Program-made: the position numbers and the translations under genes | The notes under the pieces: generated by a model | What the model saw: only the letters and a program-made list of their open reading frames with translations | What the model was told of the DNA's origin: nothing | The model's database searches: none | In this document: in pieces, positions 11,028 to 20,011 of the stretch | Layout of the letters: each line of letters starts with the position of its first letter | How positions within the stretch are numbered: position 1 is the first letter of the stretch | From: Oikopleura dioica | Lineage: Eukaryota > Animalia > Chordata | Direction of reading: 5' to 3' | Assembly: GCA_907165135.1 (NCBI GenBank) | Contig: OU015568.1 | Span: 9,362,001-9,426,000 of the forward strand | Length of the DNA stretch: 64,000 nucleotides

Positions 11028-14000
11028 ATGTCTTCGGCTTTTGCCGAACTTGGCGTTTGTGATGAGATCGTGCAAGGCCTCTACAAGATTGGATGGGCCC
11101 TTCCTACGGATATTCAAGCAGAAGCTGTTCCATTGATTCTTGGAGGAGGAGATGTTCTCATGGCGGCCGAAACAGGATCTGGCAAGACTGGAGCGTTCTG
11201 TCTCCCAGTCATTCAAATCGTGAACGAGACAAAGCAAGAGTCTGGCAAGCCACAAATAAAACGCTCCAAGCCTGCGGGGTCAGTGTCCTGCAAATTGAGC
11301 ATGGAAGAGCGATCGGATATCGTGGCCGTTTCGCCCGACGGATTGCAAATGCAGTGCCGTGATTTCCGACTGTGGGGCGGTTGCCGATCGACTTGGGCGA
11401 CTAAAGAAAACGCTGTTGCTTTTTACGAAGTGACATGCACCGACGAGGGATTGTCGAGATTCGGCTTTGGGACGATCACATGCGACTTGAACCTGGGAAC
11501 GTGCCCTGAAGGTTTTGGCTTCGGCGGTACTGGAAAGAAATCCAATCGCCGACAATTTGACAGTTATGGGGAGCCCTTCGGACAAGGAGACATTATCGGT
11601 TGCTTGATAGATCGACAGAGGAACGAAATCAAGTATTTTAAAAATGGACGAGACCTTGGCGTCGCTTTTCAAATCCCGAATTCGATGAATAAAGAGCCGC
11701 TTTATGCCATTTGCTGCTTGAAAAACGCAGAAGTGGCAGTCAATTACGATGGCCCTTTCAAGCACCCTCCAGGGGGGAATTTCACTGCGTATGGGAAGAT
11801 GGATGCTTCAGTTAGATTCGCTGCTGGAGCAGGACCTTCCGTCAAAACTGGTAATACAAAGGGCCTTCCTATGGCGATCATTCTTGAACCTTCCCGTGAG
11901 CTCGCCCAGCAGACTGAACAATGCATTGAAGACTTCTCTCAGTATCTTCCCTCTCCGTCTGTAAATTCAGTCTGCCTCGTCGGAGGCGGCGACTCGAGAT
12001 ACCAAAAGCAAATCGTTGAAGAAGGCGTCGACATCGTGGTTGGAACGCCCGGTCGATTGGAAGACTTTATTAATTCAGGCGTATTGAAACTGGACAACGT
12101 CAGGTTCTTGATCGTGGACGAGTGCGACGCGCTTCTCGCGCAGAATCAACAGCGACTCATCGAAAATATCCATCGAAAATGTCCTCACATCTCGCCCGAA
12201 GGTCGTCGTTTGCAGATGGTTGTCTGCTCAGCAACGCTGCACAATTTCAATGTAAAGAAACTGGCGCAGAAATTGATGAGCTTCCCGACTTGGGTAGATT
12301 TGAAAGGCGAAGGTAAGTTCATTTAGAAAAATTCTGCTTATAACTAACATTTTCATTCAGATTCTGTGCCGGATACAGTACATCACTGTGTGGCATTAGT
12401 TGATCCGACAGAAGATCGCTCCTGGTTTGATTTGTATCGAAACAAAAAGGTTTAGTTCTTGAGCACGCGATTAGCCGATGATCTACTTTTCTTCTTTAGG
12501 GAATTATCACAGACAGGGTGCATCAATCCGACCAAGTCTCGAATGCCGGCCAAAACTGCTCTGACGAAAGCGTTTCAGAAGGGATTAAAAAGCTCAAGGG
12601 CGAGTACGTCGTTAGAATTATCAAAGTAAGAGTTTCTTGCAGCAGAAAATAGTTTCAAATTCTCTTTCAAGGCGCATAAAATGGAGAAAGCGATAATTTT
12701 CTGCCGAACAAAATTGGATTGCGACAATTTGGAGCGACTCTTCATCAATAATTACGGCGGCGGGCCCTATTCCAAGGGAAACTCTGATTTCTCCTGCGTC
12801 TGCCTTCATTCAGATAGAAAACCCAATGAAAGAAAGGCGAATCTTGAGCGATTCAAGAGAGATGAAGTTAGGTTTCTTATTTGCACGGATGTTGCTGCTC
12901 GAGGAATCGACGTCAAGGTAAAATTTTTCATATAAAATATCGAGTACATCAAGGGGAATCTATGGAGATCGCTGGATGCCTGAAAGCGTTCTGAGAGATT
13001 TGAATGATTCTCGATGTGGTTTATAAACAGCTAGTTTAAATTCTGGTTCAAAAAGTTCACATCATTTTTGTAGGGCGTGCCTTATGTAATCAACGTAACA
13101 ATGCCTGACGACAAAGCGAATTACCTCCACCGGGGGATTGGAAGGTGAGTCGGCCACCCAGACCAGATTTTTAAAAATGATAACAGCTGGAGCGTTCTCT
13201 CAGCACAACGCGGCTTATCAATCATCGCCCAGGGGAGCAAGTGACTGTAATCAGCATAGGAAATCGGTACTGTGCAGGGCAAAAGGGCCGCATTCGCAAA
13301 TAAAAATCTGTTTTCAATGGAGCCTCCTTTCTCTAATCCGTCGTACCAAGAGATAAAAACTGCAGTTGCTGCCACTTACAGTCGATGTTCTTCTTCTCCT
13401 CCGGTCTTGTATAGTATCACATCAGGGCAACGAGCTCATAGCGCAAATTTTTGGCTTTGGCAAGGAAAAAATACTAATTATAATATGTATTCTTCTCAAA
13501 ACAAAATATATAGAACCTCTTTCGTTCTATCGTGTGTACATAAATCTTGTAAAGCAAGCTATGTTTTCAAATGTTTAAATAATGATCTACTGATTGAATT
13601 CACTCAAGATTGTGGTGGTAAAAAACCTCGCCCTAAAAAACGCTATAAATTTAACTATTCTCATCCCGACTTCGCCAATGTAAATAATTATCAATTTGTA
13701 AAAATTAAAACTAAACATTCTGATCATTGTCCAAAAAGTCCATACCAATCATTGAAAAATATTTTCCGAGCTGAAAATACCAAACAATCTCTGTACTATT
13801 CGAAGGATCAAACTGATCTGACTTATTTTAGTTCTGAAATTTCTAAAATTTCTTCTCAGCGTTTACGCGGAGTTATTGATCTTACCCGGGAGAGTTGGAG
13901 TATTCAAAAAAAACTTTCGCAGCGAAAAGTGAATTGCAATGAAATTCCATTCGCTTATCGTACAATACCAATGTTTCCCGAGGATTTATCTTCATTTTTA

Positions 14001-15851
14001 AATCAAAGCGATATTCAAGAGCCATATCTTCAATATCAGTCTCCATCCATAACTGTATTTTATCTAGAGCGAGATCTTGAGCGCTTAGATATTGGCACTA
14101 GAATGTTAAATGGTCAAAGTTCAGTAATGCCCCTCGGCTGCGATGCAACCTTCAAAATTTGTCGATCTTTGAAATATTATCAACTCCTGACTATTTGTGA
14201 GTTTTGTCAAGATCCTGATGATCAGACAAAATATTTATCTGTTCCACTGATTTCCTGTCTGATGGTAGACAAATCCTATGAATGTTACGTTGAGTTTTTG
14301 ACTTATCTGAAAAATACCTTCTTCTCTCGTTTTGGTTATGAGTTAAAAATCCCTAAAGTAATTGCCGATATGGAAGTCAATATCTTTAAAAGCTTTTATG
14401 ATGTTTTCCAAAGTGAGTGTACTTGGTGTCATTTTCATTGCTTGCAAGCATGGCAGCGTAAGCTGAAATGTTTGACTAGGTCAAAACTTTGTAAGAATTC
14501 TACTGTAAAAAAAGCTTGGGATATCTGTAAAGGTCTTCCATTCATTCCGCGCCATTTGCTAAAATGTGCTTTTGATGAGCTTAGAACCTTTTGTGAACAA
14601 CAAGAGGGGGTAACGCGAAAAAGTCTTTTGCTTTTTTGCGATTATCTTGATGTAATTAGATATTTTTAATTCATTAATTTAAATTTTATTAGGAACAATA
14701 CTGGGAGAGTCAATCGAAGTGGAATCATTTTGAGCGCATTATGGTTGGTGATTATTGCCTAACCAACAATATGTGTGAAGTGAGTTTTGAAGCAATTATT
14801 ATTTTATAAAATCTAAGGCCTATCACTCATCGTTGCACGACAAAAATGTGAGAGGCCGTAATTCCCTTCGAAGATGTGTTGAGACAATTTGGCAATTCAA
14901 AGTCAAAAACCTGAATCGAGTCTGCAACAATCAGTTACGTCGGCGAAAGAAGAAAGTTGCAAAAAGACACTATTGTCTTCGAAGATTGTTAGATTTGATT
15001 TTGGAACAGGAAGACGATTGGCTAGAAAGGTTTTTGTTTTGAGAAATCATTTAAATATTTTAAATAATTTAGCAATATTCTCAAAATCTGCTCTCAATTT
15101 GCTGACTTGGAAACAGATCTCATCGAATTTCCTTCAAAATATTGCGATCTTTGAATGTATAAATGTATATATCATATTTCAAATGTTGAAATATATCATC
15201 AAATTTCCAAATTCGAGTCAGTGTTCTCTTTGGCCGATGCAGATCTATATCACTCAGCAGGTAGCATTTGGCATTGTTGGTCTTTGAAGCTCCGAGCTGC
15301 TCATGCAGCTGTTATCATTTTTAAAAATCGGGTCTGGGTGGCCGACTCACCTTCCGATACCTCCCTCCACCGTATCGGCCGCGTTGGCCGCGCCGATTGT
15401 ATGGGCCTAGCAATCTCCCTCGTGGCCAAACAAAGAGAGAAGGTTTGGTATCACTCCAATTGTAGGACCCGGGGAAACGGCTGCTTCAACACAAACGACA
15501 TCAAACACGGTGGATGTACGATTTGGTACAACGAGATGGCACTTTTGGGCGAAGTAGAAGATCATTTGAAAGGTAAAAATAATATTATGGGAGTGCACTG
15601 GTTTTTGCAGAGTTGGATGTTTGAATTAAGACACGATTGAACACATTGACCCAAAAACGATGTTAGTTCCAGTGAACGAGTTCGACGGAAAAGTCGTTTA
15701 TGGAAGGAAGAACATCGAGGGCTCCAACAACATCCTGACTGGGCACTACCGCGAGCTACTTCCTACGCTAAACGAGCTGAAGCGATTAGAAAAAAGTGCG
15801 CAGGGCTCGTTCATTGAACTCTGCACTCGTGGAACAAATATTTTTGCGTAG
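11028..15851 (+). CDS. DDX1: DEAD-box helicase DDX1 (SPRY insertion); this allele is disrupted by a MULE in motif VI
   Basis: Motifs [20 protein letters not shown] insert, [32 protein letters not shown] and the DDX1-type tail [12 protein letters not shown]. Exons 11028-12312, 12361-12449, 12500-12625, 12672-12917, 13074-13132 + 15373-15572, 15631-15851. Confidence 0.97.
13133..15363 (+). mobile_element. Autonomous-looking MULE (Mutator-like) DNA transposon, ~2.23 kb
   Basis: TIRs of ~57 bp: GGAAGGTGAGTCGGCCACCCAGACC(A/C)GATTTTTAAAAATGATAACAGCTG with 1 mismatch in 50 bp. TSD CCTCCACCG at 13124-13132 and 15364-15372. Encodes a MULE transposase. Confidence 0.95.
13317..15042 (+). CDS. MULE transposase, ~548 aa, 3 exons
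   Basis: Exons 13317-14651, 14693-14779 and 14818-15042 (41- and 38-nt GT-AG introns) join in frame. MULE signatures [27 protein letters not shown] (CxxH) and TNNMCEAYH. N-terminal C-x4-C...H-x2-H-C zinc-finger-like region. Confidence 0.92.
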
Positions 15852-15994: not shown

Positions 15995-18900
15995 ATGGGA
16001 GAATCGAAATCGACTCACTCAACAAGAAAAGACTCTTCCTTTCTTGGAAAGTCTTTCAAGAAATTCTCTCTTGGGGCGATTGTTGTCCTCTCCATCGCCG
16101 TTGGAATTCAGCTCTATCTTGGAACAAGAGTAACGAATGACGATGCAGTGCGACAGGAGAATATTCTAAAAGGACTTGAAGCGATTGAGAGAAGTTTTAC
16201 GCTTCGATCTCCAGCTCCGTCGGTTTTTGTTGGATTCGGAAGCTGCGTTGACGTTTTCGCGAAAGCGATTCCGTTGTTCAAAAAGCTTGGCTTCGCGGAA
16301 CCAAATGTGGAAAAAGAACATGGTGTTCTCAGGAACGCGGTTCAAAAATGACTCTATTGACTGTAACTTAGATATAGAATCAGAATTCTCTGAAGTGAAT
16401 GACTTAGATTTACAGTTGGGTGGTTTTTCGATCGCGATAAAACAGAAAACAATCAGATCTTATGGAAGAATTCATGTTTTATTTCAAGAAAGGCGCAGCA
16501 GCAGAAAGATACGTATCAGACAGGGAACTTTTCGATAAACTAACAGAAACGGCGAAGCAGTCAGATGATGTCAAAATTGCGTTAGGTAACGATTACTTCT
16601 AAGATACAAAAGCATACGAAGCCTTCTGGCTTCAAAAAATCGTATTTACAAAAACTGGAACTGTTGAACCTTCTAATTCTCCGCGATAGAAAGCGTCAAA
16701 CCTTTTAAATTCTTTCTCGCCGAGAAATTCGATGAATTTTTCGCGTTTTCTCCTTCCATTCCCAGTTCGTATTTCTTCCTCGGCGGTAGGGGGCTCTTGT
16801 TATCACCAGTTATCACTCTTCGGATTGCCCTCGTGATTTTCTTCTTTCTGAGTTTTTCTTCCTCGCTGAGTGGGACCTTTACGATTTTTGGACTGCTCAT
16901 GGTGCTAGAATTCAACTCCATCCTTTTATTTTTCGACGCTAATTTTTATCGACTTTTTATTTTGGAAAATTTGGATCGAGGTTGATTTTATGCGGCGCGA
17001 GCAGCGCTCCACTCCCGGTGGCGCTGCTCCCTGCTCAGCTGGACGCCGACAGTAACAAAGCGGGGGCTTCTGTTTCTACCTTATCAACCTCGCAGATTTT
17101 GCGGCGCCGATAATTATCGTTTTAGGCGGAAATGCGCCTGTCATCGCTCAACGAATCGCGAAAAACGGCGGAAACGTCGTTTTAGGTGCGCAGAATGCAG
17201 CTGACCTACCAATCGATTCAAGGGTCGTTCCGTCAGGTAAAACGGGAACCAGGGTTGCTTTTGTTAACAAATTATATTTTTTGAAAATATATTGATATTT
17301 TATTGTTTCGACATAGTAATCCTCAATGTAAAAAGATATTTTTTCTAAAGAATAAGAACTTATTAATAAAAACTTCTTCAAATTTCAGCTATATTTGCAA
17401 TACATAAATGATTAAATTTGAGTTCCCAGGAGATTGGGAAATCATTTTTTATTTTGTAAAATTGAGCGGTTTTCCGGTCGTGGCTGGATCCGGACAGAAA
17501 GTCAATTATCAGATCAATGTTTAGCTCAATCGGAAGTATTGTTTTTCATAAGCATAAAATCGCTTCAATTACCGGAAGTCGATTTTGAATACTTCCCACA
17601 ATCCTCAATACAATACTATCCGTTCGAACGGCTAGGTATTGCGTTGATGATATAATTTTTATGGATTGATTTGGCATAATTATTCTTTTAAACTTGTATT
17701 AAAATGCGTAGATTCAAGAACTTTCTGGAAGATATTCTCGATCGTTAACTTTTTATTAGGCCCCTTTGTGGACTCGAGCGACATTCACTTGATCTTAGAA
17801 TATGACAAGGATGAGAAGTTTGAAGAATCTTCCGCTAGCCGTGCGAATCGGTTCATCGTTCATTCTGATAGGTAACATTTTCTAACGACATTTAGCCATG
17901 ATTCAAAATGCAAGCTGCATTATGCAACAGAAGCTTCCTTCGATAGCGATTATATCTATCAAGTAATGGTTTTTTATTGGTCGAAATCGATAAGATATTT
18001 TGAGGATGGCCAATCAGACGGCTTGATGAATATATTCATTATCCACTGAAGCAATTGTAGGATCTCAGTATTTTTCCACTAAATTCTTAAAATAATCATC
18101 GATTGTTTATTTATTTCTGACCTAGATTCCTCACCATGTGTTTTTAGGTACAATCCTGTCCTGGCAGGACTTCAAAGCTTCAGGAAAGCACTGGATGAGA
18201 GAAATTCTCCACCAGAAGGGCTCGTTATAGGAGGCCTGCAGATGATGGGTACGTAATAATGTTCGATTTCCGAATAAATCAGCGAAACAAAATACGTAAA
18301 TTGAGAGGCTCTCAATTTGAAAGGAGGATTCCCTCCTTGAGTTTTTATTGAAAAAGATTCTTCTTTCGAGATCGTATCTTTATCAAATAGAATCTTAGGA
18401 AAATATGAGTCTCGCACAGTATATTATATGCCATGTGTGCGTTATGTAAGAACGCTTTCCACAGTTATAAATTTTGATTTTTGACATAAGTTTTGATAAA
18501 TATAGACTTCTTAATTGTTGCTGCAGAAATTCTCAATAAAGATTTCTTTAAATCTTTTTTAACTGCGTATCTAACTAGAATCCATTCTTCTAAATTAAAT
18601 GACTAGAAGAAGAACTCTTTTTCATAATAATGATTTGGTGCAACCATTAAACTCGTTTATCCAAAAGTAAAACTAATTTCTGGCGTCAATTTCCGCTTCT
18701 CCTTTTGATCTTGTCTTGATTCTCCCGTTTAGAGGGCTACGAATATCCAGAAAGGAAACGCGAAGAGCACTTTTCGTCGATCAAAGAGCTTCTTTCGAAA
18801 GTGGACGAGAGGACCAGGATCCATTTCGAGCTCGCATCATTCGTCGACGAGGAAATTCTTCAGAACATCAAAGAAAGCGTGATTCCATTTTCGGACTCGA

Positions 18901-20011
18901 TCGGCATGAACGAGCAGGAATTGCCAAATCTGCTCAGTTTGATGAAGACTGGCAAAGCTATTTCCGTCTCTGATGCTTACCCAAGGTAATTTATCTTTCA
19001 AATTGCCAATTTAAATATTCCCAATCCGAAACTGGGAGACATAGAGGACAGATTAATAGCTTATTAGCGGATTAAAACAAGCTGCTGGGAAGAAAGTATG
19101 GATTTTTATACTTTGAATTAAATCAGAAGAATGTTATTAATCCTATAATTAAAGGGGTAAGTGTCTCTGGATCTATTAAAGATACAATTAAAGATAAAGC
19201 TTCACAAGTTTTGCGTGGGTATGACTTTAAGTTTCTCAAAAGGAAGTGACCAGCCCACGGATGATGACGTCCCATTTAAAAATAGAAAAAATGGCAAAGG
19301 AAAAAGTAGCGGAAACTAAGAAACTCGTTGAAATTCTCCGTTGTCATTCTTTCCACTAAATTCAGAATCGCCTCGGTCCTTGATCAGATGCGCGAGATCT
19401 ACAAGCTCACGAAAGCTCAAAATTATCCTCGGCTATTATCACGCTTACACGTCCACAATATCGCGTTTCAAGCCATCGCGGTCCGGAAGAGCGCAGGCTG
19501 GAGGAAGACCATGACCGCGACGGCGATCTCCTCCTTGACGGCGCATAGACATGTCTGCCAGACAGACGATGTCGATTTGAAATACGCGGATGTTTTGTGA
19601 AGGGTTACTGAATCATCGGAATATGTTAAAAGCCGCGCGCGGCTTCTATTAGAGAATAAATAAGGATAATCAAAGAGCGACATTCAGCAAGTTTTAAAAT
19701 TCTCTTAGAAAGCCGCAAGCGGCTTTTATCACGCAAAAAGTAAACCCTAGAAAGATGGACGAAAGCTTTAGTAAATCAATTCTTGGCCTGGCGGATGGCC
19801 GAATCCATCTGAATCCCGAGAAGCCTGTCTCCTGTTGGGAAGAGGTGAGACTGAAATAATTAACCCGTTGACGTCAAAACGCTCGTTTCAGACAATCGCA
19901 GGCGACGCGTTCAAAATCTGCGTGGCGCCAGTCCTTGTCTGCCGCAATGTCAAGCAAACTGCAGGTGGCGGGGATAATATTTCCGGTGCTGGGCTTTTGG
20001 TGCAACTTTAA
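15995..20011 (+). CDS. ADPGK: ADP-dependent glucokinase
   Basis: N-terminal hydrophobic anchor, then GFGSCVDV, GAAAERY, GGNAPVIA, DIHLILEY..ANRFIVHSD, GGLQMM, RIHFELAS, DSIGMNEQEL, RLHVH and PVLVC..TAGGGDNISGAG*, spread over ~9 exons. Confidence 0.93.

Follow-up and report, generated by a model that had tools for sequence, protein, structure and literature searches.

How does the only DDX1 locus of a sequenced animal come to carry an apparently intact transposon within its helicase motif VI, and what becomes of the gene? The question is raised by a stretch of 64,000 nucleotides of the tunicate Oikopleura dioica (the window; GCA_907165135.1, contig OU015568.1, positions 9,362,001 to 9,426,000), where a 2,231-bp element of the Mutator-like element (MULE) type lies within exon 5 of DDX1. 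The sequenced genome is that of an Okinawan animal, OKI2018_I69 (PMC8008620), and the window is placed on the long arm of the pseudo-autosomal (PAR) scaffold. The arrangement is probably due to a MULE that recently entered one of the two haplotypes at a diploid, pseudo-autosomal DDX1 locus, where it would be sheltered by an intact allele lost when the haplotypes were merged. Positions are those of the window, and all features described lie on its forward strand. Genome-wide searches covered 64.28 Mb, in 19 contigs, and the spliced models of the transposase and of DDX1 were searched exon by exon.

The element, predicted to be autonomous, occupies positions 13133-15363, in the same orientation as DDX1. 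A repeat search of the window identified its terminal inverted repeats (TIRs), located at 13134-13189 and 15306-15361, which are 56 nt long, G-rich and 95% complementary to each other. The left TIR contains an AAG/GTGAGT 5' splice-site consensus (13142-13150), while the right one has no AG in its last 55 nt and a pyrimidine-rich end. A perfect 9-bp direct repeat, CCTCCACCG, is found flush against both element ends (13124-13132 and 15364-15372) and represents the target-site duplication (TSD); its left copy covers the DDX1 codons L-H-R, up to the first two bases of R602. The insertion point is located after the second base of this Arg codon: the frame reads DDKANYLH-R before the element and T-ATC GGC CGC GTT GGC CGC GCC after it, corresponding to R-IGRVGRA, and motif VI is rejoined across the insertion. 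The TIR pattern is not due to chance, since 17 occurrences of a 25-nt TIR core were counted in the whole assembly, as compared to none of a reversed control, and since other copies carry their own 8-9-bp TSDs.

The same junctions bear on the simplest objection, namely that the element was misplaced during assembly or polishing, by a chimeric read or by an error in haplotype merging. The assembly was built from noisy Nanopore reads and its haplotypes were merged (PMC8008620), so errors of this kind are conceivable. However, a mis-join would not yield a perfect 9-bp exon duplication flush to both TIR ends; the junctions contain neither Ns nor gaps, and the exon is otherwise seamless. An artefact is considered very improbable.

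On its domain architecture and alignments, the interrupted gene is a true DDX1 orthologue. The coding sequence consists of 741 codons in six exons: exon 1 (11028-12312), exon 2 (12361-12449), exon 3 (12500-12625), exon 4 (12672-12917), the split exon 5 (13074-13132 and 15373-15572, the 3' part starting with IGRVGRA of motif VI) and exon 6, which includes the stop codon (15631-15851); the exon boundaries were read from the sequence. Pfam matches were obtained for exon 1 with DEAD (1.2e-35), in two stretches with SPRY (4.7e-20) between them, and for exon 4 with Helicase_C (4.3e-15). A DEAD domain split by SPRY, followed by Helicase_C with the motif VI HRIGRxGR, is the defining architecture of DDX1, and is present here. 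Identity to named animal DDX1 proteins ranges between 50 and 73%. P0001, a larvacean DDX1 of 744 aa encoded on a contig of transcript size and 73% identical over exon 1, aligns without breaks up to 13145 and restarts at 15350; this alignment break and the position of codon 602 bear out the sequence-only reading, which had placed the insertion in the Arg codon of motif VI. DDX1 residues 1-432 match one locus only in the whole assembly: the gene is single-copy, and the second intact DDX1 locus, for which the sequence-only reading had left room, is not present in the assembly.

The ancestral state of the site is revealed by orthologous contigs from environmental samples. A single-copy empty site was found in four of them, two from ENA (L048 and L051), one from JGI (L049) and one from Logan ERR1726614 (L050). 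L048 and L049 show about 80% exon identity to the window and have the same downstream neighbour. Window segments 13072-13132 and 15365-15583 align to L048 5712-5772 and 5765-5983, respectively, and the overlap between the two corresponds to the TSD; the translation of the L048 exon is identical to the peptide obtained by joining the flanks in the window. L050 and L051 are closer relatives (91-94%, introns included, and 88-91% identity, respectively). Both read GCGAATTACCTCCACCGTATCGGCCGCGTTGGCCGCGCC, which is exactly the sequence of the window minus the element and minus one TSD copy; natural empty sites thus show the sequence expected from the earlier claim that the exon is restored exactly by deleting the element and one copy of the TSD. 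In addition, a 16-member cluster of open reading frames (ORFs) spanning exon 5 in several lineages gives the same uninterrupted peptide in ten of the ten members read. A further contig (L047, from Logan SRR23998797, 93% identical) stops short of the insertion site and is uninformative on its occupancy. Exact scans of JGI metagenome contigs gave no match, either for the empty-site 22-mer or for the TIR 25-mer, and the same holds for exact ORF look-ups in other samples (DDX1 exons 1, 4 and 6, the chimeric frame 15155-15637 and the transposase ORF), among which records of this genome may be missing. Because relatives carry empty sites, the insertion is, on this sequence comparison, the derived state, and it postdates the separation of lineages that differ at roughly 6% of nucleotides. 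An error of assembly would not account for such a pattern.

The coding potential of the element was analyzed by comparison with related sequences. Exon 1 of the transposase (13317-14651, 445 aa) includes an N-terminal Cys/His region, the catalytic residues D276 and D351, and C371-x-x-H374. It is followed by a putative 41-nt GT-AG intron (14652-14692) and by exon 2 (14693-14779, 29 aa), which ends with LTNNMCE, containing the third catalytic residue; amino acids 482-503 of L033, a paralogue from the same genome, align to 14714-14779. A second putative GT-AG intron, of 38 nt (14780-14817), separates it from exon 3 (14818-15042, coding to 15039; 74 aa and a TGA), where L033 amino acids 503-531 align to 14815-14901. 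The two introns are predicted because the element is colinear with intronless paralogues of the same genome: across intron 2, the element reads LTNNMCE and then AYH, as compared to the one-piece TFTNNCIESYH of L033, unbroken over the junction. The resulting frame contains no stops and encodes 445 + 29 + 74 = 548 aa. In a 40-sequence alignment, D276, D351/E353, C371 and H374 are invariant or nearly so, and N and E of the TNNxxE motif are nearly invariant in the relatives.

The assignment to a transposon superfamily was reached through these relatives. At least eight divergent paralogous MULE-type ORFs are scattered across the genome, sharing 24-33% identity and open for 541-660 aa; O. dioica, on this evidence from sequence, is host to several MULE families. 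Four of them (L034:854-3957, L036:376-3470, L038:786-3357 and L033, on contigs C3, C1, C5 and C2, respectively) were examined. All are intronless, three have their own TIRs, and all match PF10551, with E-values of 1.8e-5 to 0.017 and scores slightly short of the gathering cut-off. One paralogue (P0127, CAG5095105.1) is annotated as an ordinary gene, OKI2018_I69.XSR.g14035. A profile built from transposase exon 1 and the four paralogues was used to search 1.84 billion proteins at E<=1e-3, and 4,001 of them matched; in a sample of 39 matches, PF10551 was found in 38 (best E 5.6e-17) and FLYWCH in 14. A word-indexed protein search with transposase exon 1 alone gave no match, and no OKI protein of 245-779 aa matched the transposase, even though the OKI2018_I69 proteome is in the database. 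In a language-model atlas, the neighbours of the transposase are MULE clusters only.

The fold was evaluated on an AlphaFold model covering exon 1. Core residues 235-445 are predicted with a pLDDT (predicted local distance difference test) above 90, and the model indicates that an RNase H-like transposase fold is present. The conserved C73, H134 and C138, together with a low-confidence beta-sheet, suggest a WRKY/FLYWCH-like finger in the N-terminal part of the modelled protein. IS256 is a recognised prokaryotic kin of Mutator, and the top Foldseek matches of the modelled core are ISCth4, of the IS256 family, and Hermes, a hAT transposase, with probabilities of 0.99-1.0; at 9-16% identity, however, these are fold-level relatives, belonging to a different family. 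A hAT identity of the element, to be considered as some TSDs look 8 bp long, was rejected, since the transposase is related to PF10551 proteins and has the TNNxxE motif, and since the TIRs are long and G-rich.

Taken as sequence and model evidence, the paralogues, the profile search, the predicted fold, the TSDs and the TIRs make a MULE-superfamily assignment well supported, if by an indirect route, and a Phantom-like position within it appears plausible. TSDs of MULEs range between 8 and 11 bp (PMC6446971). The Phantom/Muta-type animal MULEs (Marquez & Pritham 2010), which include Muta1 of Aedes aegypti (group 20, PMC6446971), resemble the element in their TIRs, in an 8-10-bp TSD and in having a single transposase gene; the DDE signature with CxxH and the TNNxxE motif are also shared, and FLYWCH is carried by many of the profile relatives of the element. 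Unlike these elements, the DDX1 insertion gives no direct Pfam match to either MULE or FLYWCH, and its ORF has two short host-like introns which its O. dioica paralogues do not have. The sequence-only reading had described a MULE with a spliced frame of about 548 aa and D-D-E and CxxH signatures; frame and signatures are as described, while the name MULE comes from the paralogues, the profile and the fold rather than from Pfam directly.

The assembly contains no second full-length copy of the element: no other sequence covers its positions 1-2231 entirely. The 17 TIR cores correspond to the window copy, to five complete copies with internal deletions and to truncated or solo ends. The deleted copies are 869-1,080 bp long and 84-99% identical, figures which supply the copy number and identity that had been indicated as a check. 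In one of them (L002), positions 1-276 are joined to 1563-2231, and identity to the window copy is 97-99%. The TSD matches at 9/9 positions in three complete copies, including the window copy, and at 8/9 in the three others. In these (L002, L005 and L014), the mismatch always falls at the base touching the left TIR, which is always G on the left; either the TSD can be 8 or 9 bp long, or the element begins with a variable G. On sequence grounds, the window copy, with its open frame, probably supplies the deleted copies with transposase. The open frame, the perfect TSD and the near-identity of L002 are indirect pointers to an element that may still be active.

No obvious coding frame is disrupted by any other complete copy. 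In this respect the DDX1 insertion stands apart, as would be the case if selection has not yet removed the event. Its recent age is indicated by the perfect TSD, by the undecayed DDX1 exons and by the empty site in a relative 91-94% identical. A very recent jump had been proposed earlier, partly on account of the nearly identical TIRs. Recency stands, but the TIRs are to be dropped as dating evidence: their near-identity characterises the whole family, the differences between left and right TIR are common to its members, and mismatches between the two therefore do not date the insertion.

The effects of the insertion on the DDX1 product were read from the interrupted gene itself. Read-through from Arg602 into the left TIR gives HRGIGR and then a stop, four codons on, because a TGA sits inside the GTGAGT of the TIR. 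Splicing was evaluated by enumerating every GN-AG donor/acceptor pair which keeps the frame open. With the GT donor at 13144/13145 (AAG/GTGAGT), only the AG ending at 15264 preserves motif VI, adding 40 aa, while GG and GA donors at 13131-13146 combined with the CAG at 15308 would add about 21-24 aa. The statement that an in-frame splice-out is absent is thus not quite accurate, although the acceptors look weak, and no in-frame pair restores the wild-type protein. Precise splicing from TIR to TIR was also considered and rejected, as GN-AG ends are obtained in no register out of the ten that the TSD allows.

These pairs are the substance of an alternative explanation, according to which the insertion is tolerated since splicing removes the greater part of the element in the manner of a new intron, leaving a DDX1 protein with 40, or about 21-24, extra amino acids before RIGRVGRA. 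Stop-free in-frame pairs do exist, an open frame runs from 15155 through the right end of the element, and about 11% of O. dioica introns are non-GT/AG. Against it, the in-frame acceptor at 15264 is the third AG of the cluster CAGCAGGTAG and, unlike the own acceptors of DDX1, has no T-rich tract; the better-looking acceptor, the CAG at 15308, does not keep the frame when joined to the GT donor, and leads to a TAA; the strong acceptors of the transposase introns, located upstream, would produce frame-shifted chimeras. Besides, 21-40 additional residues beside motif VI would probably harm the helicase. Rescue by splicing appears unlikely.

A more general form of this idea was also taken into account. 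The GTGAGT donor, which lies 12 nt into the element, is conserved in 16 of the 17 genomic TIR ends. At the opposite TIR end (15337-15363), a branch-point-like CTCAC precedes a stretch rich in pyrimidines, and if the downstream TSD copy ended in AG, splicing would leave only 12 additional nt, stop-free in all three frames. It could be imagined that the TIR family is built to soften exon hits, and that the DDX1 allele is hypomorphic rather than null, part of its pre-mRNA undergoing the splicing event which adds 40 aa, with the MULE becoming an intron. The upstream TIR would then act as donor in either orientation, and a nearby AG in the flank may complete the intron. We hold this to be rather improbable.

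Insertions into exons by maize Mutator and Ds elements are partly spliced out, by means of splice sites in their termini. The O. dioica element is similar in its sense orientation within a coding exon, in the 5' splice site of its TIR and in the pyrimidine-rich opposite end; it differs in that its most convincing donor/acceptor pairs do not preserve the frame and no pair yields the wild-type protein, a comparison made on the sequence. Introner-type DNA transposons, which create introns (Huff et al. 2016, as cited in PMC13326754), offer a second parallel, being DNA transposons which carry one splice site into an exon. Intron turnover and non-canonical introns are well-known features of O. dioica. 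Compared to introners, which are short and high-copy, the element is low-copy, 2.2 kb long and predicted to be autonomous. Here, in addition, the TSD supplies no AG, and an exact or near-exact removal is consequently unavailable.

A further alternative is that the insertion is fixed, or homozygous, and that DDX1 is dispensable in the Okinawan lineage, where it would be a pseudogene at an early stage. O. dioica has lost many conserved genes, and the sole DDX1 locus is the interrupted one. However, the remaining DDX1 exons are all open, with proper splice sites, and the peptide of exon 5 is identical to that of relatives at 80-94% nucleotide identity; for L048, the exon 5 protein is 100% identical, despite a nucleotide identity of about 80-87%. 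Intact exons and a peptide unchanged in the face of a divergence of about one nucleotide in five also argue against a long-standing pseudogene. The partners of DDX1 in the tRNA ligase complex, RTCB, RTRAF/RLL and FAM98, have been kept in the genome, where they score above cut-offs, and the nearest relatives carry empty sites. Loss of DDX1 function throughout the lineage is judged quite unlikely.

We therefore return to an insertion on one haplotype, for which the following course of events may be envisaged. A cut-and-paste MULE, probably Phantom-like, would have inserted into exon 5 of one DDX1 allele, producing a target duplication of 8-9 bp. Transcripts of this allele would run from Arg602 into the left TIR and stop after four codons; alternatively, the GTGAGT donor of the TIR would be spliced to out-of-frame acceptors. 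Either product would be devoid of motif VI and of the C-terminal 140 residues, and the allele is for this reason most likely null; allowing for weak splicing signals, it can be described as probably null or close to null. Its survival would be due to the diploid state of the locus, the other haplotype, with an intact exon, having been discarded at merging. The procedure by which OKI2018_I69 was obtained is compatible with this: the source was one male, with a heterozygosity of about 3.6%, and a 99-Mb draft was processed by HaploMerger2 into separate reference and allelic sub-assemblies (PMC8008620).

Several observations weigh against this interpretation. Pfam scans of the three transposase exons, up to E<=10, gave no MULE (PF10551) or FLYWCH match, and the transposase has no close full-length relative, the closest among those sampled showing 50% identity over 169 aa. 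The window copy has two private TIR changes (GGGGAATGG to GGGGATTGG and ATCAGGTC to ATCGGGTC), and these substitutions, falling in both TIRs, could impair its mobility. A GT-AG pair compatible with motif VI is available, as described above. A protein search with DDX1 exon 1 matched no OKI protein of 238-756 aa, though proteins of OKI2018_I69 are included in the database searched; at 11028-15851, the public annotation may have a fused or split gene model, or none. Finally, the analysis establishes the anatomy of the insertion, its empty sites, the single DDX1 locus, the kinship with MULEs and the identity of the scaffold, and from the assembled sequence we infer heterozygosity, the null effect, the splicing of the transposase introns and the current activity of the element.

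Additional features were observed around the locus. Downstream of DDX1 (about 16000-19000) lies an ADP-dependent glucokinase-like gene, recognised by PF04587 on orthologous contigs (L048:6100-8767), and this gene order is common to the window and to its 80%-identical relative. In L047, an 88-nt insertion (L047:1261-1348) is located in DDX1 exon 1, at a point corresponding to about 11813-11818 of the window, and is flanked by a TAGATT direct repeat. It has GT-AG ends in no register, and may represent a small insertion of transposon-like character, or else a non-canonical intron. About 150 extra nt are found near the same point in L048; the window contains neither insertion.

Documentation of MULEs in chordates is scarce: one tunicate sequence, from Ciona savignyi, is contained in group 20 of Dupeyron et al. 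2019, and is the single Ciona sequence of that survey (PMC6446971). The element described here has the appearance of an intact and recently mobile one, and its host is a laboratory tunicate with an extremely compact genome. In a reference assembly obtained from one animal, a conserved single-copy gene can thus be represented by an allele that is probably knocked out, a point to be considered by users of the OKI2018_I69 gene models, or of BUSCO-type gene counts. Should the allele be expressed by splicing, it would represent a live case of intron birth; otherwise, it would be a textbook example of a deleterious transposon polymorphism, that is of ordinary transposon biology. If the transposase is active, the element and its short derivatives would provide a possible native tool for insertional mutagenesis or transgenesis in Oikopleura.

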